DNA of 64,000 nt, from the sequence record OP729297.1, one strand, 5' to 3'. Shown piece after piece: positions 2,286-14,500 of this stretch; position 1 is the first letter of the stretch; each line of letters begins with the position of its first letter. Both the position numbers and the translations under genes were made by a program. Below the pieces are notes generated by a model that had not been told where the DNA came from, did no database searches, and saw only the letters and a list, made by a program, of their open reading frames with translations.

Positions 2286-2304
2286 AAACCCAAGGAGTTC
2301 TTTG

Positions 2305-4644
2305 ATGGCCACTGAATCTATCTACGTTGACGCATTGCGTCTAACGCCTCAGGGAGAACAGGCCGTTGCGAACGCTAACGCTGGTGGACTTGCTATTCAA
2401 CCAGTGTCGTTTAAAGCAGGTGACTTTGTTGGCTCTAACCCTTCTGTGGTTCCAGAGCAGTTACTTGGCAGCGAGCTTGCGTCGGGCGCATTGTCGTATG
2501 TTCAGGTTCTTACCGAGAACAGTGCCCGCTTTATCTTTGATATTAAAGTCAACTACGTTGCAGGCGAATCGCTGAAACGAGTTGGTGAGCTGTTGATCAT
2601 GCTTTCTGACAACCGACCTTTTGGTCACGTTGTTCTGCAAGAGCCTATCATCGCCGTACCGAACTCTATCAATCGCGTTAGCCTTCTCGTACATATTCAG
2701 CAGGACATCCAAAAGATTCTTGCTGTGAAAATGGCTGACTACACATCTATACCGAGTGTAGCAACGCTCCAGAACTTACCGAGCTTGAGCGATAACGTGT
2801 TCAATGCCGTGTCGGTTCTTGATATGCACGTTAACTCTGACGGCACACGCTCTCCAGGTACTGCATATCGTTATGGACAAGGCTCATACTATTGGGCTTT
2901 CAGTGAGCATGACCGTGTGTTCAGCGGCCAGATTACTGCCGCAGGATTCATCAATGCAAACACGTTCAAGATTGCTTCGCTGTCCTCAGTGTTGAAGGCT
3001 AACGAGGTTGTTCTGATTCAGACAATCTCGGGTACGGGCGCTGGTGCGTGTCGTCACTTCAAATACACGAATGGTCAACTGGTCAACATGGACAGCGCGA
3101 TTCCATTCGTTAGCGCACAGACAACTATTGCCGTGTGGCGACGCATCACTAACCCAACAACTCCGTCTGCTGGCATTCCGTGGCCGCTGAATAACGATGT
3201 ACCAGAAGCGTGGGCATTGTACAGAGGCAAAGACTTGCAGCCGTATTGGGGACCTGTTGCTGGTGGTACTCGTCAAACAACTGGTACGCTGTTTGTTCCT
3301 CCAGGCAAACTGTTATTCAGTTCTGTTGTGACTACAGCAACGCCTGATAAGCTGCGCTACACGCTGTCTGAGATTCTCGATAGCTCAACCGACCTGTTGC
3401 TTGGTACGTCAGGTGTTCTCCAGCCGCGTACTGCCTACAGTGTTGTTGATGACCAGCTTCTGCTTTCGTCTTATCCTGAACAACGTATGCAACTCGATAT
3501 GCGTCAGTTCCGCGTTGAGCCTTCTCAAGGTCACGTTGTTCTGTTTGAGACATACGAAGGTGTTGGCGACGGACAGACTGCGCTGTTTAAACTCGGCAAC
3601 AAACCGATTGATAGCGTTGACATGGTGTTCTGTGTCGTCGGTTCAACGTGGCAGCCTACCACCGTGTATAAACTCACGAATGGTAACAGCGTAACGTTAA
3701 CCGAAGCAATCCCGTCAGGTCAGAAGTACACATTCTATGTAGCTCGCTATGAAGAACGCGCCAACTGGTCTACTCGTATTCGTGTTGCTCAGTATCGCCT
3801 GCCTTATGATGCTGATACATTTGTTCTGCCAACTACGCCACTGAACAAGTCGCATTGCGTTATGGCCATGAGCGGCCTGACAGTACACACGCAGGACTTC
3901 ACAGTAGCGGGCAATGTGCTGAAAACGTTGTCGCCTATTCCTGCCGACACACTCATTGAGATCACAATCTTTGAGAACGTTATGGCAGTAGGCTCGAAAG
4001 ACAGTTCGGTCGATGGCGTTATCATTGATGCTATCCCTACGCCGACTGGCTACATGTTCAAACGTCAAGGTCTGCCTCCTATCGACGTGCCTATCGCTGC
4101 ACCTGAAATCATTCAGGGTGAGGGCATTCAGATTACAGGCAAGTGGCCAGAGATTACAATTCGTAATACTCAGGCTCTCGCCGAAGAAGCTGACCCACGC
4201 AACATGTACAACATTCAGCAGAATGCGGACGATTCGGAAGAGCTGGTTATTCAGCAGCGCATCGAGTTCAAGAAAGGCATCATGCTTACGTGTGTCGCCG
4301 ACTTCCAGTGCCAACTAGGTCCTGGCTTTGCTGCCACCAGCGGTAAAGAGCATCTCGAATATGTTCTGTCGTTCAAGGTGCCTGGTACATCCGAAGCTGA
4401 ATATGGGCGTGGCCTTAAAGGCACAGGCAGTGCTGGCTTTAACGTTGTTACTTCTGATGCGAGTCTGACAGAAGTGATTGCGTATTCAAACGTTAGCCTG
4501 ACGCAGATGTTCACGGTGCTGATAGAAAACCAACCTCAAGGCTTCATTGATATCGTTGCTAAAGTGCGTATCGTTAACGCGCAGATTACAAGCTACGGTT
4601 CGAAGCTGTCAGGTAACTTGTGCATTAAGGTTGAACCGAAATGA
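2305..4644 (+). CDS. Tail fibre/baseplate-associated protein with tail-collar-like N-terminus and three ~60-70 aa beta repeats
   Basis: GGAG RBS then ATG at 2305. The N-terminus ([14 protein letters not shown]) resembles tail-fibre attachment domains, followed by repeats of the type [10 protein letters not shown]...QP..Y...N.VTL...P.G. Confidence 0.55.
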
Positions 4645-6080
4645 CAACACAGTTAAAACTTTCGCAAATCGAAACAACGGCTAACGATGAAGGTAAATCG
4701 CTGGTCGGTGTTGATGGTAGCGTCGAGTTTGAGTCTACGGACTTAGCGACGAATACTCAGATCGCAAGCGTAAGGTTTAACAGCAAGACAGGCGTGTTGG
4801 TGTTCATCAAGAAGAACGGGGAAGTAGTGAACGTCCCCGGACTTCCTACTATTGCTATGTTCGGTGAAGGGAAACCTGGGCGTCGAGGCGCTCCAGGTGC
4901 TCCTGGCCGTGACGGACGTGATGGTCGAGATGGTGAAACAGGCAGACAGGGCTGCGAAGGTGGTCCTGGCTCTAAAGGTAAGACTGGTCCTGTTGGTGAC
5001 CCAGGACGTGATGGTGAAGACGGTCCTCCTGGTGATACTGGGCGTCAAGGTCCAGACGGTCCTACGGGCCCAGACGGCCCTCCTGGTCCTACAGGTAACA
5101 TCGGTCCTCGTGGTGCTACTGGAGCAAGCTGTATCTCTGGTGCTACAGGCCCTACTGGCCCAGCGCCTATTACAACTGCTGTTCAGTCTAACACGCAGCC
5201 TACAGATGGTCGTGTGTTCGTTTGGTTGTACCCTACAGCCAACGTTACGCCAGCACCTCCTCTGCCTACTATAACGCCTCTTGCTGCGTCAGTGTCTAAC
5301 CTGTACATGGTAGGTCAACGTGCAGTGCAAGGCTCTGATGTATTTACTTCGCTTGCATACCTTCCTGTCAATGCGCGTGGTGGTGTAGGTCCATATAAGT
5401 ATCAATGGTCTATCACAACTACTGAGGGCGTAACGCTTGGCGCTACTGATACCTCAACGTGTATTGTTAACTTCTATCTGCGTCTCGGACTTGGTGCTGA
5501 TCGTACAATCAAAGGCACAATCCGTTGCGTAGTTACTGACCTGGGCCAAGCGTCACGTCCTACTGTTACTGTGAGTTCTGCGCTAACAGTTGTTGCACGT
5601 AACCCAACAAGCTCAACGTCTGGCTGTATTGTGTTTGGTTCTGTTGTCGAAACAATTACAGGACCTAAAGCTGTCGAGGACTTACGTGTAGGTGATAGCC
5701 TACTGAGTTTCTCTAATCAGCCTAAGAACTTCCGTCAGTGGTCTTCGCCTAGTCTCAAAGGCAATCTGGTGAATGCTACTGTTGTCGGTTTGAAGTACGG
5801 CGAAGAAGATCACTACTTCGTTATCAACGGACAGAAGTTCACACACGAACATCCAGTGCTTGTATATGACGATAGCGTGTGGCGTTATATTCCTGCGCGT
5901 GATGTGCAGCCAGGGAATACAGTGCTTGGTCGTAAGGGTCCTGTGTCAGTGTATGAGTTCCGCCGCGTAGATAATCAAGTGAAGACTGTTGATATCGACG
6001 TTGACCCATTTGATTGTTATTTCGTTGGTGATGTGCTCGCACACAACACGGATATTGTTGCGAAAGCGGAGAAAAAGTAA
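4641..6080 (+). CDS. Collagen-like fibre protein with an Ig/PKD-like domain and C-terminal Hint domain
   Basis: About 33 G-X-Y triplets, then a [10 protein letters not shown] Ig-like module, then CIVFGS...THEH...LAHN-T. Confidence 0.85.
5625..6047 (+). other. Hint (mini-intein / bacterial intein-like) domain, 141 aa
   Basis: Cys1 (TGT 5625), VEDLRVGD block, TxxH block B (THEH), terminal His-Asn (6042-6047), +1 Thr; no endonuclease insert. Confidence 0.85.
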
Positions 6081-6712
6081 TGAGTCTGATTAAAGTTAAG
6101 ACCGGTCTCATTCAGGCTGGTTCTTCGTCTACGCCTACTGCGATTCGTGCTCAGTCTGGGGTTCTCTCGATAGACCCTAGCGACGAACAGGTTCCCTCTG
6201 AGGTAACTTCCGATTCGTCGTTCGATGCAACTTCGGGTATTCTTACTCTCAAGTTTGCTAACGGGCAGACAGTTAAGGTAGGCGGCTTCCCTACTGCTGC
6301 TGATATACCTGAAGGTCGTCAGGGCGGTAGAGGTGAGACAGGTGCTGATGGTAAAGACGGACGAGATGGCCGCGATGGTAATCCAGGTGAGCCTGGGTGT
6401 ACTGGTCCTGTGGGTCCAGATGGTGAGCAGGGTATCCCAGGACCAGATGGCCGTGACGGATTACCAGGCCCTGTTGGTCCTACTGGCCCAGATGGTAGAA
6501 CAGGCCCTATGGGTCCTACTGGTCCTACTGGCCCTCGTGGCGGTACTGGTCCTACAGGCGCTACTGGTTCTACTGGACCGACTGGTCCTACCGGCCCTGC
6601 AGGTCCTGCTGGACGCCTGTCTATCATCGTCAGTGCTACTAACCCAGGGAACGTTGCTGCTGGCACAATCTGGGTGGACCCTACCAAAGATCAGAATATC
6701 ACATGGCCATAA
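6080..6712 (+). CDS. Collagen-like fibre protein 2
   Basis: [15 protein letters not shown]-domain, long G-X-Y tract, C-terminal SATNP..GTIWVDP motif. Confidence 0.85.
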
Positions 6713-6721
6713 GGAGGCAAC

Positions 6722-7213
6722 GTGGTAGAAAAAGTTGATATATCGCTCGTTAAGGCCAATGCTTCTGGTCCTGTCGTAGCGACCGAAGGGGGAATCACAG
6801 TTGATACTGTTCAGGATGATAGCCAACTCAGCGGCTCATTCGATGCAGTTACAGGTCTACTGGCGATTAACATCCCTAATATCGGCAAGCTCCAGATTTC
6901 TGGTCTGCCTACAATACACAGCATCGGCTACGGTCCTGCTGGTGGCGTTGGTCCTGCTGGCCGTGATGGTATTGATGGTCTCATGGGTAGCGATGGTCGT
7001 CGCGGTACTGATGGCTGTCCTGGTCCTCGTGGTTCTGATGGGCAGCAAGGTAAGCAAGGCTACGTAGGTAATCGCGGGCCTGCTGGTCCTACGGGCCCTA
7101 CTGGACCTACTGGCGCGCCAGGTAATCCTGGTACGGTGATGGTCTTCGTACAAGATACAGATCCAGCCATTGATAATGAGATCGCACCAGGCGCCATCTG
7201 GGTACGGCCGTAA
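6722..7213 (+). CDS. Collagen-like fibre protein 3
   Basis: AAGGAGG RBS and GTG start; FDAVTGLL..GLPT domain, G-X-Y tract, ends PGAIWVRP. Confidence 0.85.
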   Translation: MVEKVDISLVKANASGPVVATEGGITVDTVQDDSQLSGSFDAVTGLLAINIPNIGKLQISGLPTIHSIGYGPAGGVGPAGRDGIDGLMGSDGRRGTDGCPGPRGSDGQQGKQGYVGNRGPAGPTGPTGPTGAPGNPGTVMVFVQDTDPAIDNEIAPGAIWVRP

Positions 7214-7222
7214 GGAGAGAGC

Positions 7223-9247
7223 ATGTCACGTTTTCGCGTTCGTAATGCTGCGAATAACGGTTGGCTTGACTGCGTGGACACGCCCATGTTCATACGCACA
7301 CATGCAGGAGACTGGACGCCATTAAGCCCAGACAAATTCAGTGTGCGTAATCAGTGGGGAAAGAGTTGGTTACCAATCAACGACTCTTTCGACCCTACGT
7401 ATGATGACCCGTGTTCAAACCTTGAGACGGGCGCATGTGGTGGCGGTCCAACGTCAACTACCAAAGGTTCTGGTAACGGGATAGGGAGTGGTGGCCGTGA
7501 GAAATACGATATCCTCAAAGGCTATCCTGCAGGGTTTGATTTACCTGATGCTGGTCGCACTGGCTTCGGTCTTATTAACTCTTTCTCTCCTCCTACTGGT
7601 CGATCTATCAATAGACCCGGCATCAAGACCATCGAATCATACGACCCTACTGGTGTTGCTTCTCGCGCAGGGCTAGGCACTTATGCTAACCCTAACGTAC
7701 CTTACGCTTCTGTTCATGGGCGTGGTGCTGTTATCACCGAGACGTATTATGCAATGCCAGCAATCGAAGGTTACGTGGAGCTGATGATCGCGTCCTATGC
7801 ACCAGCTGGTGCTAGTGTTGACGTGTACCACATGGGTGTGCGTGTTGCATCGACGTGTGGTAAGCTGGCCGGTCGCTCGCGCATCAAATTCCAATTCGAC
7901 CCTGACGCTGCTGATATGCGTATCATGGTGCGTGTGCGTACAACGCAGGGTTATGGCTGGAGCTTAGAAGTATATCCTCCGCGCCTTGCCGCACCTTCTG
8001 ACCGTGGCGGATTAGCTCTCGATAGTCAGGCATCGTATGACGTTATCAATTTCCCTGACGTCATTCATCCAGACTACATCGGCAGCCCAATCTTCCCTGC
8101 ACCATGTCATGCAACTGTTTGGCCTATTGCTGAACGTATTCAGAATGCTAACGCTTTCGAATACTATCACTTCATCGGCTGGACAGCAGGCTGGATGTAT
8201 CTCGACTACACCTCGTGGGAAACATTCGACTTCATTGAGGTCTATCAGTCTGGTCGCCGTATCGCTACGACGCTTGACGCTCGTACTGGTGAGGGTTATC
8301 TGTATTTCTACTTTGACCCTCAAGGTGTTGCATGTGATATCATGGTGCGCGTAGTCAGTAAGGACTTTGGTAACGCTGCCTCGCTTGCGAGTTGCTTCTA
8401 CAGTCTGTACTGTCCTGGTGAACGTGGTGCGCGTGAATACATGCACCCTTGCCAGAGCTACAGCGTGTACTCTGCCGGTCATCCAACCACAGAAGATAAT
8501 TTTGCGTTAGGAACTCAATCGGACATTCGTGCAGAGCTTGTTGTTTGTGTTGCGAACTCGTTCGATACCAAGTTCGAAGTGTTTGACCAAGACATGAACG
8601 TGCTCGATACCTCTATCGTTGCTGCGGGCAAGACTGGTACACTCGAATTTTGGAAGTACCCTGAGCATGTGCTGCGCTCTAACATCACTGTACGAGCGAC
8701 AGCGCCTATCGGATGTGATTGGTCATACTTCGTGTACTGTCCGATTCAGCCTCCTAAGATTAACGTGAGTGACTTCACCGTTCCTTATCGTTGCGTAACA
8801 ATCGAAGGTGGTAACGATCAGCCGCCAGATTCAGACGTTCTGCCGTGGCAGCCAAACGCATGGGAACAAACAGGTGGACGCGGTACAGGTTCTCCTAATG
8901 CTTCTCAAGTGTGGACACGCGACGGTAACTACATGAACATCTGGGGCGGTGTGAATGGTTGGTTCAAGTGGGGTAACTTCTTCACTAAGCCAATTAAGCA
9001 AATCACTTTCGCATGGGTGTACGACGGTAAGAATGGTGGCTGGCACACAATTGAGATCTACGAGCGCACTGCTGGTGAAGGCGCTGCTAAGAATCCTGCA
9101 AACAACAGCGGAACGTATCAGTATTTCACGTTCGATGTGAACATACCTGTTGGCCAAGAAATTTGGTTGCGTGTTCAAGGTGGCGGTGACCGTGGTGACT
9201 CGAACGACCTCGATTATCTCGCTATCACCAACGTAGTATTTGGATAA
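7223..9247 (+). CDS. Cys-rich virion fibre-associated protein with three internal beta-sandwich repeats
   Basis: Three N-terminal (F/M)x(V/I)R(N/T)..W repeats and three ~110-aa repeats with the pattern ..VY..G.R(V/I)A(S/T)T....F.FDP....IMVRV. Confidence 0.55.
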   Translation: MSRFRVRNAANNGWLDCVDTPMFIRTHAGDWTPLSPDKFSVRNQWGKSWLPINDSFDPTYDDPCSNLETGACGGGPTSTTKGSGNGIGSGGREKYDILKGYPAGFDLPDAGRTGFGLINSFSPPTGRSINRPGIKTIESYDPTGVASRAGLGTYANPNVPYASVHGRGAVITETYYAMPAIEGYVELMIASYAPAGASVDVYHMGVRVASTCGKLAGRSRIKFQFDPDAADMRIMVRVRTTQGYGWSLEVYPPRLAAPSDRGGLALDSQASYDVINFPDVIHPDYIGSPIFPAPCHATVWPIAERIQNANAFEYYHFIGWTAGWMYLDYTSWETFDFIEVYQSGRRIATTLDARTGEGYLYFYFDPQGVACDIMVRVVSKDFGNAASLASCFYSLYCPGERGAREYMHPCQSYSVYSAGHPTTEDNFALGTQSDIRAELVVCVANSFDTKFEVFDQDMNVLDTSIVAAGKTGTLEFWKYPEHVLRSNITVRATAPIGCDWSYFVYCPIQPPKINVSDFTVPYRCVTIEGGNDQPPDSDVLPWQPNAWEQTGGRGTGSPNASQVWTRDGNYMNIWGGVNGWFKWGNFFTKPIKQITFAWVYDGKNGGWHTIEIYERTAGEGAAKNPANNSGTYQYFTFDVNIPVGQEIWLRVQGGGDRGDSNDLDYLAITNVVFG

Positions 9248-9250
9248 CAT

Positions 9251-9266
9251 AGGGGCTTCGGCCCCT
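9251..9266 (+). terminator. C(UUCG)G hairpin, weak U-tract (terminator or RNA-stabilising stem)
   Basis: AGGGGC-TTCG-GCCCCT immediately after the stop at 9247. Confidence 0.55.
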
Positions 9267-9288
9267 CTTCTCGATCTAAGGACATAAC

Positions 9289-12168
9289 ATGCTGCAACAA
9301 AGCTGCTTGTATGCGCGAGGCATTACGCCTGTATTTAGCGGTAGTCCTGGCGATGGCTCTATTACCGCAGTAGACGCTATGGCAGTTGATAGCTCACGCT
9401 TCACCTCTTTTGTTGTTGATGGTCATGCTCTTTCATACGTATGCGGCTTCGGCTCTGTTTACATGAATGGTCGATTCATCCGCGACGGTAGTCCTCTTGT
9501 TGATGCTAACTACGGTTGGCTCGGTAACTACCGCAATAAGAGCATTAACAACATGGGTGTGCTGCGTCACCTGTTGACACAACGCGGCTACAACTCGAAC
9601 ATCACATATGGCAGCACCATGCTTGTCATATCAGACCTTGCACCTGTCAATGATGACACTGCAATGGAGTCGTGGGGACAACTCGTTGCGTATATGCAGC
9701 GCATCCCTCTCGACATGCTTGCTCATAGCTGGCAAGAGATTAACGCTGGTGCGTATGGTTATGACGGTACGTACAAGTATTTCAAGCAGTTCAGTTGCGT
9801 GATGCTTCTGCTGTCTGCGCCCAACCAGAGTATGCCTGCCCAAATGCTTAGTGCTCTGAGTGAGGCCCATCGAAACGGCGTCAGCCTGATTGTGTTGCAG
9901 AAAGGTCCGTATGAAGGCAACGTAAACTTCAACGCGATCTTTAATCCACTCGGCATTCGCAGTAACGGTCAGGCGTATGTTGCTTCTACCGTTGCAGCAA
10001 AGAACAAGAGCATTAACGCATTCGGCAATCATGTATCTTGGACCAACGTCGCTCAGTTGCATAACCAAATCAACTTCGAGCTATCTGCTGCGTATCAGTT
10101 CACAGGAGCTACGCAGGCAGGACCAGGCACTATTGGTGGTCAGCCAGGTACATGGCGCCAGTTCTACTGCGGACAAGTTGATATCTCTGACGATGTTGTC
10201 ATTGACCCACCTCTTATCTATCGTGACAAGTGCTGCGTCGAACCAGGCTCTGCGTATCAGGTAGACTTCGATGTTACTACATATCCGCAGAAGCCCGATG
10301 ATTGGGCAGCGCGTATGGCAGCAGGTGATGTTACAGTCTCTTGGTCAAACGAAAACGCGCAGTCACTTGCAGCACGTAGCCTAATCTTCTCTCACGTCGT
10401 AGGCTACCAGCGTTATCTCGACACAGGCGATACAGGCTACACAATCTTTAACGGTACTCGCTACACCGACACTCGTGGCTGGAACGTCTATAAGATTCGT
10501 AAGTCAGACCGCGCGTTGGTTGAGCGTCGTACATTTGACATTCACGCATCTGCCGAAGGTACTAACCCAGGTGTTGCGAACGCTGCTGCCTGTGCGGCTT
10601 TCTTGAACTCAATTGGCTCTGACCATTACGTCTACGTTGTGTCTTACGATACGGCCGACGTTAACCGTTTGCAGGGTGGGCTACCTCAAGCCATGTACCG
10701 CATTGGTGCATCGCGTCGTGTGTACGCAGGTTCGCAGTATGTGTATCGCGCTGCATACTCTCTGTTTGGTGAGCCTGGTATTGGTGAAGGTAACGCGTGG
10801 AATGAAATGTATCGTGGCGCCAAGTCGTCTGATACTGACAGCTACTTCTCTGTCGGCTATGACTTCGACACGAATGGTTTCCCTTACGTTACAGGTACAG
10901 ACCGCGAAGGCAACATGAGCATGGCGCTCAACGGTTTGTTTGAGAACACCAAGAGTAGTCACCTGCGCTACTACAAAGTGCTTGGCTCTCAGGACGGTGC
11001 CTCGACAATGGGGATGCAGCACAACGTTACGATTAGGGATAACCGTTTCAAGAAGCTGCCTATGTATGAGTCAAAGACCTTCGTTGTGTCTGTGACTAAC
11101 CCATGCTTCCCTGTGCCTAAGATTCAGTCTCACGATTGGGTTCACGTTGTTAGCCGCGCCAACAACCGCTACGTTAAATATCCGTTCAAGGACCTATGTG
11201 AGTATCTGATTACAACGTCGGACGGTAGCGGCCAGAACGAAATGTGTACCTCTCACCTGATGATGAACTGGGATATGTTTGGCTCAATCGGGTCAGGCAC
11301 TATCTACAACTCTGCTGGTGCATCGCATAAGATTTACTGCGGTACTGAGAACGGGAACATTAATGACCCGAACTCGTTGTATATCCAAACAACGGAAGAA
11401 GGGAAAGTGTGGCACATCTATGAGCGTAAGTATCAGCTCATTACAGAAGAAGCCTCACGCGATTCGAACGACTGGCAGGTTGTCTGGAAATGGAATGGCG
11501 TCGGTACTCAAGGCCACAACATCCAGATTGAGGCCGGCTATGAGTACATCGTGTTTGCGTATGACCGCTACGGCGAGATTGAACTTGCAGAGCGTCACTT
11601 CTTCGTACCACCAGCAGAGTATTTGCCTAAGTGGGGATCGAACTACTACTGCCGTGACTTCTCGAACTCAACCACGTTCACAGTAGACCGTTCGCTGCGC
11701 TGCAATGCGTACTGCGAGAAGTCTAGCAACAATGGCGGTGAGAACGGGATTATGATGATCATTCGTCGTCCTCTGTTCTTAACTACTGGCGCTGCTGACC
11801 GTACTGGTTGGGAATGTATCTTCAACAACAACGGCACATCGGTTCCTCGCGGGAATAACTACAACATCCCGTGTGTGAAAGATTACCAGTACATGGTGCT
11901 GTGCTCTGTCGGTGATGGTGCTTATTCTTCTCACCACTTCAATGCGTGGAAAGGCGCTTTCGATATGGTGTGGGAAGGATTGTTTGAGGCTGACTCTGGT
12001 GGCCGTGCTTCCTGGACAGAAGGACTTGTGACGTTGATGCAAAGCGGAAACTCAGGAGGACGCACAATGGATTGCTTCATTGACGACGGACGCGCTAACC
12101 CTATCGGTGTGTTCCAAGTATGGCGCCGTCCTATTCTGTGCTGGGAGCCTGACGAGATTGATGGTTAA
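9289..12168 (+). CDS. Large multidomain fibre/receptor-binding protein containing an ILEI/PANDER-like (GG-type lectin) domain
   Basis: RGWNVYKI...RTFDI...AAFLNSI...YVVSYD...MYRIGAS...YRAAYSLFGEPG (about 10471-10820) matches the ILEI pattern; there are two further C-terminal repeats. Confidence 0.6.
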   Translation: MLQQSCLYARGITPVFSGSPGDGSITAVDAMAVDSSRFTSFVVDGHALSYVCGFGSVYMNGRFIRDGSPLVDANYGWLGNYRNKSINNMGVLRHLLTQRGYNSNITYGSTMLVISDLAPVNDDTAMESWGQLVAYMQRIPLDMLAHSWQEINAGAYGYDGTYKYFKQFSCVMLLLSAPNQSMPAQMLSALSEAHRNGVSLIVLQKGPYEGNVNFNAIFNPLGIRSNGQAYVASTVAAKNKSINAFGNHVSWTNVAQLHNQINFELSAAYQFTGATQAGPGTIGGQPGTWRQFYCGQVDISDDVVIDPPLIYRDKCCVEPGSAYQVDFDVTTYPQKPDDWAARMAAGDVTVSWSNENAQSLAARSLIFSHVVGYQRYLDTGDTGYTIFNGTRYTDTRGWNVYKIRKSDRALVERRTFDIHASAEGTNPGVANAAACAAFLNSIGSDHYVYVVSYDTADVNRLQGGLPQAMYRIGASRRVYAGSQYVYRAAYSLFGEPGIGEGNAWNEMYRGAKSSDTDSYFSVGYDFDTNGFPYVTGTDREGNMSMALNGLFENTKSSHLRYYKVLGSQDGASTMGMQHNVTIRDNRFKKLPMYESKTFVVSVTNPCFPVPKIQSHDWVHVVSRANNRYVKYPFKDLCEYLITTSDGSGQNEMCTSHLMMNWDMFGSIGSGTIYNSAGASHKIYCGTENGNINDPNSLYIQTTEEGKVWHIYERKYQLITEEASRDSNDWQVVWKWNGVGTQGHNIQIEAGYEYIVFAYDRYGEIELAERHFFVPPAEYLPKWGSNYYCRDFSNSTTFTVDRSLRCNAYCEKSSNNGGENGIMMIIRRPLFLTTGAADRTGWECIFNNNGTSVPRGNNYNIPCVKDYQYMVLCSVGDGAYSSHHFNAWKGAFDMVWEGLFEADSGGRASWTEGLVTLMQSGNSGGRTMDCFIDDGRANPIGVFQVWRRPILCWEPDEIDG

Positions 12169-12177
12169 GGAGAGCGT

Positions 12178-12381
12178 ATGCCAGCTTATGCACGTTTAGC
12201 ATTCAAAGACCCAAGCAGAGACAGATGGGTAGCTAATTTAGCGTATGGTGGAACGAAGGTTCGGTATCAGGATTCAGATGGAAGTGTGCGTTGGGTTCGC
12301 ATGACAATCAACAACACCAAAGTTAAAAATCCTGAGGCTGGACAATCGGGTCAACCAGATTGGACAACACTGACTGGTTAG
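12178..12381 (+). CDS. Small fibre adaptor-like protein (67 aa, three Trp-ending repeats)
   Basis: AAGGAG RBS; repeats resemble the N-terminus of the 7223 protein. Confidence 0.55.
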   Translation: MPAYARLAFKDPSRDRWVANLAYGGTKVRYQDSDGSVRWVRMTINNTKVKNPEAGQSGQPDWTTLTG

Positions 12382-12392
12382 GAGTTTAGCCC

Positions 12393-13214
12393 ATGTCTCT
12401 TACGAAGATTAACCCTGCACTTATCGACGGCGGTGCTTCGCCTGTTGGTAAAGTGTTGGGTAAGAAGACGGCGACCGCTGTTGCGTTTATCGACCCAACA
12501 GAGGCTGCAAAGATTCCCGGCTCTCAGGGTGTTGAGTTTGACACAACTACAGGTACGCTAACAGTCATCTGGCCTGATGGTAGTCAGTCTAGTGTTATCG
12601 GACTGCCTACTGCTGATCAGCTTAAATCAGGGCGCGAAGGTAAACAGGGTAAAGACGGCTTACGCGGTCTCCCTGGTGCTGATGGTCGTGATGGTCGTGA
12701 TGGTGAAGATGGTTGCCCGGGACCTCGTGGCCCTCGTGGCCGTAACGGACCTACTGGTAACACAGGACCTGTCGGCGCTACTGGTAACACTGGCGCTGTG
12801 GGTCCTACTGGTGCAACTGGTCCTACAGGTAGCCCGGGACGCGATGCTGCTATTGACGAGTATCGTGTGTCTCAGGCGCTCAACCCAAACACCGGCGCTG
12901 TAATACCGAACGCATGGATTGGTAGTAACCGTGACATGAACACAGGCTTTACTCAGAACATGGGTCGAGTCGTGAACGCGTCAACTACTGATACCATCCA
13001 CGTTGTGTTTAACACGGCATTCATCAACCGTTGTATCAGCATTAACATCACGTTCGTTAACGCTGCTCTGAACCAAGCAAGGACCTACCAGCTCTACAAT
13101 CTGGACGGTACGAGCGCGATGAATGAGAACGCCCTGTTAGGCGGCTTCACCATCAAGTCTACTGGCACCAACACTGCTGGCTGGGACTTCTGGTATACTG
13201 CGGTAGGTGATTAA
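12393..13214 (+). CDS. Collagen-like fibre protein 4 with a C-terminal tail-fibre tip-like domain
   Basis: FDTTTGTL..GLPT domain, G-X-Y tract, C-terminal HVVFNTAF...GGFTI...FWYTAVGD typical of fibre tip domains. Confidence 0.8.
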   Translation: MSLTKINPALIDGGASPVGKVLGKKTATAVAFIDPTEAAKIPGSQGVEFDTTTGTLTVIWPDGSQSSVIGLPTADQLKSGREGKQGKDGLRGLPGADGRDGRDGEDGCPGPRGPRGRNGPTGNTGPVGATGNTGAVGPTGATGPTGSPGRDAAIDEYRVSQALNPNTGAVIPNAWIGSNRDMNTGFTQNMGRVVNASTTDTIHVVFNTAFINRCISINITFVNAALNQARTYQLYNLDGTSAMNENALLGGFTIKSTGTNTAGWDFWYTAVGD

Positions 13215-13215
13215 T

Positions 13216-13692
13216 ATGCCGATAATCAAAATCAATCGCGCCACGAATGCAATTATTGGTCGTGTGCGCGAGAAGACAGACGACGATTGCATTGAAGTTA
13301 GTGACGAGCTATTCGGCCGAATCATTGGCGACCCATCTGCATTCGCGTTTGACCCTTCTACTGGTCAGATTGATCTTGTCGAAGGATATGATACAGCGCC
13401 TCCTGATATCGACCCTGTGGTGCTGGCGCAGTTCGTTGCCGAAATCAACCAGAACATCTTAGTGCCTGAGCTTGGCGTTGAGATTAGTATCTCTGGTGAC
13501 TTAGGCAACCATCTGCTATTTGCTTTGGCTTGTGCGCAGTTTGCTCCGCAGACTATTGTGTGCAACACCAAAGGGAAAATCAGCACACTCGTTGTCGATA
13601 AGGCTGCTGCCAAACTGATCGCTAAGGCCTTCTCCGATAAAAGTTCTATTATTCTTCAATCGTTAGGAGTCTCGGATGAGCCAGTTGACTAA
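13216..13692 (+). CDS. Putative tail-fibre assembly chaperone
   Basis: Follows a fibre gene; size and position are typical of assembly chaperones; ATG at 13216 after a GGTGA RBS. Confidence 0.35.
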   Translation: MPIIKINRATNAIIGRVREKTDDDCIEVSDELFGRIIGDPSAFAFDPSTGQIDLVEGYDTAPPDIDPVVLAQFVAEINQNILVPELGVEISISGDLGNHLLFALACAQFAPQTIVCNTKGKISTLVVDKAAAKLIAKAFSDKSSIILQSLGVSDEPVD

Positions 13693-14500
13693 CTACGTGG
13701 ACACGTTGATTAGTCTTGCACAACAGCAAGGTCTGTCAGCGTCGAACGATATTGTGTATAAGGTAAGTGCTGATGTAACAATCATCTTAGCATTCGCCGA
13801 ACCTTACACTCGCGTTTTCCCACTGAACGGTCTCTGGATTATCGCGGACGGTACGAACGCTAACTATAAAAAAGTGATGCGTCGTAAGTCCAAAACTGCT
13901 ACGGCTCCTTATAGGAATACGTGGCAGGAAGAGACCGACTACAATACGGTGATGACCACTGTTCAAGTCTGGGACGAGGCTGATTTGCCTGCTCCTCAGA
14001 TTATCAGCGCAAGTGGTGGACGTCTTACCGGTAAAGTTCTTGTGCGCACAGGTGTAACAACCTACGATAACGATGAACTGATTCCTAAGTCCTATACGGA
14101 CGGCGTTCGCACGGCGATGAACAACTCGTTCTTCACCATGTTCAACAACATGAACCAGCGCGTTAACTCTAACCTTAGCGCCATTCGTACCATTCAGTCT
14201 GATGCACAGCTTCTTACAGCGCGTGTGACAGCACTTGAAGAAGGTTCGAGTGAGCCAGAAACAAAAGGGTTAGTGTTCGTGCAGGAGAATGCCGACACCG
14301 TTTGGGCTTTGCGACATGGATTGGGCAAAGGCAACGGCATTCCTTACGTCACTGACGAGAGAGGAGAAGTTCTATGGCCGGAAACTGTTACTCCAGCCGA
14401 AGCCGATCCAGACAACGTATTGCTGCTTACATTCTTGGAGCCTGTCTCTGGTGTTGCACAGCTTCTGTACACGCCGAAAGCCGAGACGAACCTTCAATAA
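13676..14500 (+). CDS. Virion structural protein with a short coiled coil and C-terminal W.I.H.L module
   Basis: GGAG RBS; C-terminal VFVQENADTVWALRHGLG...TFLEPVSG module shared with 17028, 18705 and 19313. Confidence 0.55.
   Translation: MSQLTNYVDTLISLAQQQGLSASNDIVYKVSADVTIILAFAEPYTRVFPLNGLWIIADGTNANYKKVMRRKSKTATAPYRNTWQEETDYNTVMTTVQVWDEADLPAPQIISASGGRLTGKVLVRTGVTTYDNDELIPKSYTDGVRTAMNNSFFTMFNNMNQRVNSNLSAIRTIQSDAQLLTARVTALEEGSSEPETKGLVFVQENADTVWALRHGLGKGNGIPYVTDERGEVLWPETVTPAEADPDNVLLLTFLEPVSGVAQLLYTPKAETNLQ

Follow-up and report, generated by a model that had tools for sequence, protein, structure and literature searches.

Why do four collagen-like proteins encoded at a single bacteriophage locus all carry a cysteine at exactly the same distance from a common N-terminal domain? 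We addressed this question in positions 4641-13214 of a 64-kb window, the window being the whole stretch of DNA analysed (64,000 nucleotides of record OP729297.1). The genome of a 263-kb jumbo myovirus, Erwinia phage vB_Ea_2910A (OP729297.1), matches this segment with 100% identity, and 47 further records from Alexandravirus and its sister genera, with the hosts Erwinia amylovora and Dickeya solani, match it at 74-99% identity. Relatives of this phage have been described as 'hairy Myoviridae', and the same 2018 study stated that the hair proteins were unidentified and named tail-fibre proteins as candidates (PMC6143709). The four genes, g4641, g6080, g6722 and g12393 (families 0 to 3), form a paralogous set predicted to encode collagen-like fibres of the baseplate or tail in a hairy jumbo myovirus, and may encode its hairs. 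We lean, tentatively, towards the view that their shared cysteine links separate fibres side by side and in register, rather than knotting three different chains together. The features on which the analysis draws are the following.

4641-6080, plus strand: g4641, family-0 collagen fibre gene (479 aa) with N-domain, collagen, C-cap motif, Ig-like region and C-terminal Hint domain; open reading frame (ORF) with Pfam Collagen and PT-HINT matches, phrog_38766 'virion structural protein' (E 1e-256) and orthologs in 11 loci
4641-4850, plus strand: N-terminal beta-rich domain of g4641 (aa 1-70, ending in GLPT), common to the paralogs in alignments; no Pfam family
4869-5165, plus strand: collagen domain of g4641, with 29 Gly-X-Y triplets, a Gly-to-Cys interruption (triplet 30) and 3 further triplets
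4953-4955, plus strand: TGC codon of conserved Cys105 of g4641, X position of triplet 10
5130-5132, plus strand: Cys164 of g4641, second conserved Cys of family 0, Gly position of triplet 30
5625-6047, plus strand: Hint (intein-like) autoprocessing domain of g4641, aa 329-469, followed by 10 residues; PF07591 at 31.8 bits (cutoff 27.7), with invariant C329, T401xxH404 and H468-N469
6080-6712, plus strand: g6080, family-1 collagen fibre gene (210 aa) with N-domain, 34 triplets and a 30-aa C-cap; its start overlaps the g4641 stop
6398-6400, plus strand: TGT codon of conserved Cys107 of g6080, X position of triplet 10, the sole Cys of the protein
6722-7213, plus strand: g6722, family-2 collagen fibre gene (163 aa) with N-domain, 23 triplets and a 24-aa C-cap
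7016-7018, plus strand: TGT codon of conserved Cys99 of g6722, X position of triplet 10, the sole Cys of the protein
12393-13214, plus strand: g12393, family-3 collagen fibre gene (273 aa) with N-domain, 24 triplets and a beta-rich C-terminal domain of ~120 aa; weak PF21882 Gp53-like_C match (E 0.013) and a beta-rich AlphaFold2 (AF2) model of low confidence
12714-12716, plus strand: TGC codon of conserved Cys108 of g12393, X position of triplet 10

A cysteine in the same register of four collagen-like proteins

The original prediction, made from the letters of this DNA, held that the four genes share an N-terminal domain and that a cysteine is the 35th residue after GLPT or GFPT in each. Both points were borne out in all four ORFs, where the motif is followed by 4 residues, 10 X-Y-G triplets and then the cysteine. 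In Gly-X-Y terms this cysteine occupies the X position of triplet 10, which leaves the glycine register intact. Exactly four modules composed of the N-domain and this cysteine occur within the 64-kb window. The proteins have a common layout: a beta-rich N-domain of ~70 aa, ten charge-rich proximal triplets of the GRD/GKD type, the cysteine, a Pro/Thr-rich helix, and a short C-cap with a beta-strand and Trp. All four pass the threshold of Pfam Collagen (PF01391; 51-55 bits, cutoff 27.2), and no Pfam family was found for the N-domain.

When the four proteins are aligned, one Asp and the triplet-10 Cys are the sole residues other than Gly that are invariant in the collagen part. Among 51 unique sequences, representing 4 paralog families and 14 phage genomes, the Cys column is 96% conserved (49/51), versus a mean top-residue share of 43% at the other X and Y columns. 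The two exceptions are the family-0 protein of phage JA11, which has an Asn, and a family-2-like protein of the metagenomic jumbo-phage contig L013, which has an Ala. Across 11 related loci, the Cys is kept in all four families save the family-0 protein of JA11, and it is present in 26/26 metagenomic orthologs of g6080, with identity down to 44%. A profile running from the N-domain through the Cys was also searched against 1.84 billion protein representatives. This search yielded 118 modules with the N-domain; the Cys was found in 93/118 overall and in 89/93 of those at the protein N-terminus, and the spacing between N-domain and Cys was free of indels in 109/118. The 35-residue spacing, which the original prediction proposed to check in related phages, is conserved in most of these modules and in the 11 related loci. 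Some close homologues have another residue at the Cys position, namely Ala, Glu, Pro, Asn or Lys.

A contrast between N-terminal and internal modules (Cys in 89/93 vs ~0/18) was rejected as evidence because it is confounded by divergence, the 'internal' modules being adhesin-like repeats (P0155) or sharing only the last pre-collagen hairpin. Gene conversion was likewise ruled out as the source of the common register. The DNA of the paralogs is 60-80% similar, periodically, without long near-identical stretches, and the Cys codons differ (TGC or TGT), so that conservation acts at the protein level. Judged from these alignments, the Cys and its distance from the N-domain are under strong purifying selection in at least 7 genera and in distant metagenomic phages, and the fixed axial reference point common to the paralogs is therefore real. 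No description of the triplet-10 Cys was found in our literature searches.

To what could such a cysteine be bonded? Idealised triple helices were built from backbone dihedrals, and 93 clash-free models were kept in which the helix rises by 8.4-8.9 Å per triplet with a twist of 30-56 degrees and the Gly N...O=C(X) distance is 2.8-3.1 Å. In these 93 models, the interchain X..X distances are 8.4-8.9 Å between Cβ atoms and 6.6-7.2 Å between Cα atoms, and the X Cβ points outward at 5.1-5.4 Å from the axis; the interchain X..Y Cβ-Cβ distance is 4.0-5.6 Å. Because same-position cysteines are all X residues, 8.4-8.9 Å apart and directed outward, a disulfide among them would be impossible in an undistorted helix, whether a homotrimer or a heterotrimer. 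The common register together with the outward geometry of X argues against a knot within the helix and for a link to something outside it. The proposal that the Cys and the N-domain fix the stagger of the chains therefore survives in part: the register point is real and g4641 and g6080 look coupled (see below), but an intra-helix disulfide is disfavoured by the X..X geometry.

On the reading that we favour, the proximal module of N-domain (serving attachment, trimerisation or both), ten charged triplets and X-position Cys would have the same role in all four fibres. Each trimer would display a ring of three outward thiols ~8.6 nm from the N-domain, and this ring may serve to cross-link a helix in register, either to a separate helix or to the virion. 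Starting from a common base, the fibres would lie side by side over their first ten triplets, disulfides would staple them once they are outside the reducing cytoplasm, and the fibres would then splay, like a C1q or collectin stalk. The same register would be needed in every paralog, since the thiols of different fibres must share the same height. Beyond the Cys the helices diverge, with ~33-34 triplets in g4641 and g6080, 23-24 in g6722 and g12393, and differing C-termini, and the two long paralogs would be specific in-register partners. Loss of the Cys by single paralogs while the others keep it, as in family 0 of JA11 and family 2 of L013, is expected of optional staples and not of a fold requirement.

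Apparent pairing of g4641 and g6080

The uninterrupted triplet runs number 29 in g4641, 34 in g6080, 23 in g6722 and 24 in g12393, and collagen length is constant within each family over all genera (29+1+3, 34, 23 and 24 triplets). Measured from where the helix begins up to the aromatic residue of the C-cap, the span is 118 residues in g4641, 119 in g6080, 89 in g6722 and 95 in g12393, and the near-equal span of the first two is found in all 12 loci. The two length classes (~33-34 and ~23-25 triplets) recur in the distant metagenomic phages L012, L013, L017, L019, L021 and L023. At the C-terminal side, g6080 and g6722 terminate at the C-cap, g4641 continues into its Ig-like region and Hint domain, and g12393 continues into the domain of ~120 aa, which is likely a binding tip. 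A PDB sequence search with the collagen proteins returned collagens only, and no chain-selection domain (C-propeptide, NC1 or gC1q) was found by Pfam or by the PDB sequence search.

Charge complementarity between chains was scored for all 64 ordered trimer compositions, taking the contacts of each Y residue as X(i-1) and X(i+2) of the next chain; because the metric is crude and the counts are small, the score was used only as a hint. The g6080 homotrimer scored highest of all compositions (mean 24). The g4641 homotrimer scored about zero (mean 0.6, with a minimum of -18 in the Yersinia phage), and one g4641 chain with two g6080 chains reached ~22. No negative design against homotrimers was apparent among the 64 compositions, except a weak one for g4641. 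For the region distal to the Cys, z scores were calculated against triplet-order shuffles in ten non-redundant genomes. The g4641 x g6080 combination was complementary in 10/10 genomes (z 1.1-2.8, mean 2.0), while g4641 with itself gave z -1.0, g6080 x g6722 was anti-complementary (z -1.5) and g4641 x g6722 was neutral. The complementary positions vary by lineage; examples are K/K opposite D/E at triplets 12-13 and, elsewhere, an acidic run opposite K15/R16. Reciprocal patterns of like and opposite charge were seen at triplets 12-13 and 14-18 of the two proteins. In the independent lineage L013, the g4641 x g6080 signal appeared again (z 2.1).

The cysteines of the two long families are also correlated. 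Among distant relatives, Cys occurs at triplets 10 (X), 20 (X) and 30 (Gly position) of the family-0-like proteins and at triplets 10 (X) and 20 (X) of the family-1-like proteins, and the short class has it at triplet 10 only or not at all; this ten-triplet period was found in the metagenomic jumbo-phage contigs L013, L016, L017, L021, L022 and L023. Families 0 and 1 agree in the triplet-20 Cys in 16/16 genomes: both have it in L013, L017, L021 and L023, and neither has it in 12 Erwinia, Dickeya and Yersinia loci. In a 10/3 collagen helix the axial repeat is ten triplets and the thiols would lie on one face, which would not be so in a 7/2 helix; we mention this as a remark only. Taken from charge and cysteine patterns, g4641 and g6080 look like in-register partners.

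The Gly-position Cys of triplet 30 (Cys164 of g4641, 5130-5132) is kept in every family-0-like protein seen, distant metagenomic ones included. In a homotrimer, three core-facing Cys164 thiols would sit close together, and a hinge, a cystine or a metal site would be possible.

Would the two proteins fold into a single helix? A mixed heterotrimer of g4641 and g6080 (2:1 or 1:2, similar to collagen I), with its Cys rings facing outward and a single g4641 chain bearing the Ig-like and Hint domains, is an alternative that we consider unlikely. It would account for the near-equal spans, the overlap of the g4641 stop and g6080 start codons, the gain in charge score from about zero or below to ~22 when g4641 is combined with two g6080 chains, the positive cross score against the negative self score of g4641, the reciprocal charges, the recurrence of the charge signal in L013 and the concordant triplet-20 Cys; in addition, the Gly-to-Cys break at triplet 30 would disturb the helix less if a single chain carried it rather than all three. 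However, lateral in-register packing of homotrimers would give the same response in this crude, small-count metric, and because the g6080 homotrimer scores best, nothing forces mixing. Moreover, L012 and L019 have a family-1-like gene without an adjacent family-0-like gene, and a heterotrimer of phage or prokaryotic collagens was not found in our literature searches.

A wider form of heteromeric assembly combines these possibilities: g4641 and g6080 would co-fold or pair in register, and all four fibres would be stapled by disulfide rungs every 10 triplets (at triplet 10 in all four and, in relatives, also at triplets 20 and 30 of the long fibres). We regard this as possible but not probable; our literature searches found no description of heteromeric phage collagens.

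Possible partners for the triplet-10 cysteine

The preferred reading, in which separate fibres are linked side by side, fits the finding that the N-domain and Cys module is carried by fibres of different length and with large, unrelated C-terminal domains, as expected of separate trimers. In L014 the module is found on fibres of 25 and 31 triplets (proteins of 404 and 968 aa), and in L012 on fibres with 34, 23, 53 and 52 triplets.

Several considerations weigh against it. First, oxidation of the Cys in the virion is something we infer, and because the phage assembles in the reducing cytoplasm any disulfide would have to form after lysis or release. Second, the bundling of the first ten triplets is deduced purely from sequence conservation, and the GRD/GKD-rich segments could equally be the ordinary stabilising or nucleating sequence of collagens that lack hydroxyproline (Hyp). 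Third, the charge and co-variation signals fit lateral association of homotrimers and a mixed g4641/g6080 helix alike, and the compared genomes are related, so the counts of conservation and concordance are not independent events. Fourth, on the structural side, the helix models are idealised, although they were filtered for rise, twist and hydrogen bonds. The AF2 monomer models are poor, with a pLDDT of 56.5 for g6080 (29-sequence alignment) and 51.9 for g12393 (20 sequences); only the N-domain and the C-cap reach ~70-80, and a Foldseek search of the PDB with these models gave no match below E 0.01.

Instead of another fibre, the Cys might bind a non-collagen virion protein, such as a baseplate or sheath socket, through a disulfide or a tight thiol contact. 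We judge this rather unlikely. The side chain does point outward, the Cys goes with the virion-proximal module whatever the distal end, and the cluster lies in a baseplate module among large conserved proteins that contain Cys. However, no partner Cys was identified, and the triplet-20 and triplet-30 Cys in the long fibres of distant phages would need an elongated partner with the same 10-triplet period.

Two roles that require no partner outside the fibre are improbable. The first is a clamp within the trimer, in which two of the three cysteines of a homotrimer would bond after local unwinding and so stabilise a helix that is short (23-34 triplets) and Hyp-free; the location of the Cys at the border of the charged proximal and Pro/Thr-rich distal segments would suit it. 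The X..X geometry would nevertheless demand distortion of the helix, the odd number of thiols would leave one unpaired, the homologues with Ala, Glu, Pro, Asn or Lys indicate that the fold does not need the Cys, and the concordant triplet-20 Cys of two different proteins would be unexplained. To the second, a role unrelated to redox chemistry as a packing or hinge residue, an inter-helix metal ligand or a modification site, we also give little credence. Cytoplasmic assembly is reducing, and conservation alone does not specify the chemistry, which is in its favour; yet Cys is rare at the X and Y positions of collagens and is here conserved far above its neighbours, and nothing in the locus suggests a modifying enzyme.

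The original prediction had combined g4641, g6080 and g6722 into one 1:1:1 heterotrimer whose register would be set by an intra-helix disulfide at the invariant Cys, and this we now consider very improbable: although the three genes are adjacent, have the N-domain and Cys register in common and could tolerate Cys loss by a single paralog if one disulfide per trimer sufficed, their same-register Cys are all outward X residues with Cβ atoms 8.4-8.9 Å apart, g6722 has 23 triplets rather than 33-34 and its own C-cap in every lineage examined, so that a mixed helix would leave 10-11 triplets of the two longer chains unpaired and misplace the g6722 C-cap, its charges are anti-complementary to g6080 and neutral to g4641, and the 1:1:1 permutations have a mean score of 11.0, near the average of the three homotrimers.

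The surrounding locus and known collagen systems

The collagen genes belong to a conserved cluster whose order is 780-aa protein, collagen with Hint, collagen of 210 aa, collagen of 163 aa, 674-aa protein, 959-aa protein, 67-aa protein and collagen of 273 aa. The same order was found in 11 related phage loci from at least 7 genera, which include Alexandravirus, Sasquatchvirus, Yoloswagvirus, Salmondvirus, Rivsvirus and Snuvirus in addition to a Yersinia phage. Homologues of 272, 164 and 210 aa have been listed for phage JA11 (PMC6143709). As for phage tail fibres, the collagen proteins match PHROG tail-fibre families (8745, 5073 and 6320) and virion-protein families, and the locus adjoins tail and baseplate genes; in contig L013 the collagen cluster directly follows PAAR, gp25 and Baseplate_J genes. 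The other genes of the cluster are as follows.

2302-4644, plus strand: conserved 780-aa protein directly upstream, in the same place in all related phages; its stop overlaps the g4641 start
7223-12168, plus strand: a pair of large conserved genes separating the family-2 gene from the family-3 gene; their products have 674 aa and 959 aa, the latter with an ILEI-like domain that scores below threshold
12178-12381, plus strand: conserved 67-aa ORF without Cys, always before the family-3 gene in related phages

The ILEI-like domain of the 959-aa protein (9289-12168) scored 25.2 bits vs a cutoff of 27, and the JA11 homologue of this protein has 1177 aa. Among the fibre genes there is also a 274-aa ORF (13676-14500) that is labelled 'HNH endonuclease' in RefSeq and PHROG. 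This nuclease label looks doubtful, since the ORF has no Pfam match at E<=0.01, it also matches PHROG tail-protein families, and one related record names it a tail-fibre protein. Identical copies of the four collagen proteins were found in Alcaligenes phage Afa-NA1 (PV550095.1, 78 kb) and Salmonella phage Sen-NF (PV359490.1, 108 kb). The sizes and hosts of these two records look inconsistent with a jumbo-phage origin of the collagen module, and in Sen-NF all annotated CDS abut with zero spacers.

The C-terminus of g4641 resembles Hint/BIL autoprocessing domains in passing the PF07591 threshold and in having Cys1, TxxH and the terminal HN, which are invariant in 11 orthologs. It differs from them in that the +1 residue after HN varies, 10 residues follow, and no toxin domain is present in g4641 despite the Pfam name PT-HINT. 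The +1 nucleophile expected of an intein is inconsistent among the orthologs (T, V or M), and with only 10 residues beyond it the domain is predicted to be a self-cleaving Hint/BIL domain and not a splicing intein. We also considered the triplet-10 thiol as the acceptor of a thioester made by the Hint domain. This was rejected because JA11, L012, L013 and L014 keep the Cys without Hint. JA11 lacks the Hint domain, as do distant family-0-like proteins in which the triplet-10 Cys is kept, and the domain is therefore uncoupled from the Cys.

Among phage collagens, EPclA of an E. coli prophage has a Hyp-free collagen helix between non-collagen domains, one of them trimerising, and forms an ordinary homotrimer of dumbbell or rod shape that belongs to tail-fibre modules (PMC3368898). 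The window proteins are like EPclA in having a Hyp-free Gly-X-Y helix flanked by non-collagen domains in a tail-fibre module. EPclA, however, has PfN, PCoil and PfC domains, is a single homotrimer and has no conserved Cys reported, whereas the window set has four paralogs per genome, a different N-domain, fixed length classes and a register-locked Cys. The streptococcal Scl1 and Scl2 proteins have an N-terminal globular trimerisation domain followed by a charge-rich, Hyp-free helix of the GKD type, an arrangement that the window proteins also show, with the N-domain directly before the charged triplets. The Scl proteins are single homotrimeric cell-surface proteins without Cys, C-cap or paralog set, three features that the window proteins have.

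In cystine-knot collagens, such as the C-terminal knot of type III and the FACIT junctions, and in the C-propeptide cysteine code of fibrillar collagens, each chain contributes two Cys, located in a globular propeptide or where the helix ends. The register Cys of the window proteins differs in both respects, because each chain has one, at the X position of the tenth triplet of a continuous helix. In one published account, cysteines help to decide which collagen chains stay together (PMC6181919). If fibres are indeed linked at triplet 10, the phage system would differ from animal collagens, which register their chains by knots and propeptides. The register-locked Cys, periodic by 10 triplets in relatives, would be a simple signature that points to covalent in-register linkage of different helices, and the module would offer collagen-material design a compact natural means to align and cross-link Hyp-free triple helices. 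The conserved four-gene set is also an obvious candidate for the hair proteins of the hairy jumbo myoviruses, and it would provide a bacterial-virus system in which heteromeric collagen assembly could be studied.

The closest parallel in architecture is offered by C1q, in which A-B and C-C interchain disulfides join chains and trimers (PMC5902488). Like C1q, the collectins and adiponectin, the window set comprises several paralogous collagen chains from neighbouring genes. The Cys of C1q, unlike that of the window proteins, lies in a short N-terminal segment outside the helix, and assembly of C1q is driven by the C-terminal gC1q domain; neither a gC1q nor a lectin domain was found in the window collagens by Pfam. 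C1q is thus an analogy and not a relative, the Gly-X-Y repeat being its sole similarity to the window collagens. If the heteromeric assembly considered above proves true, the locus would encode a viral counterpart of the C1q stalk, and heteromeric assembly of collagens would have its first described case beyond the animals.

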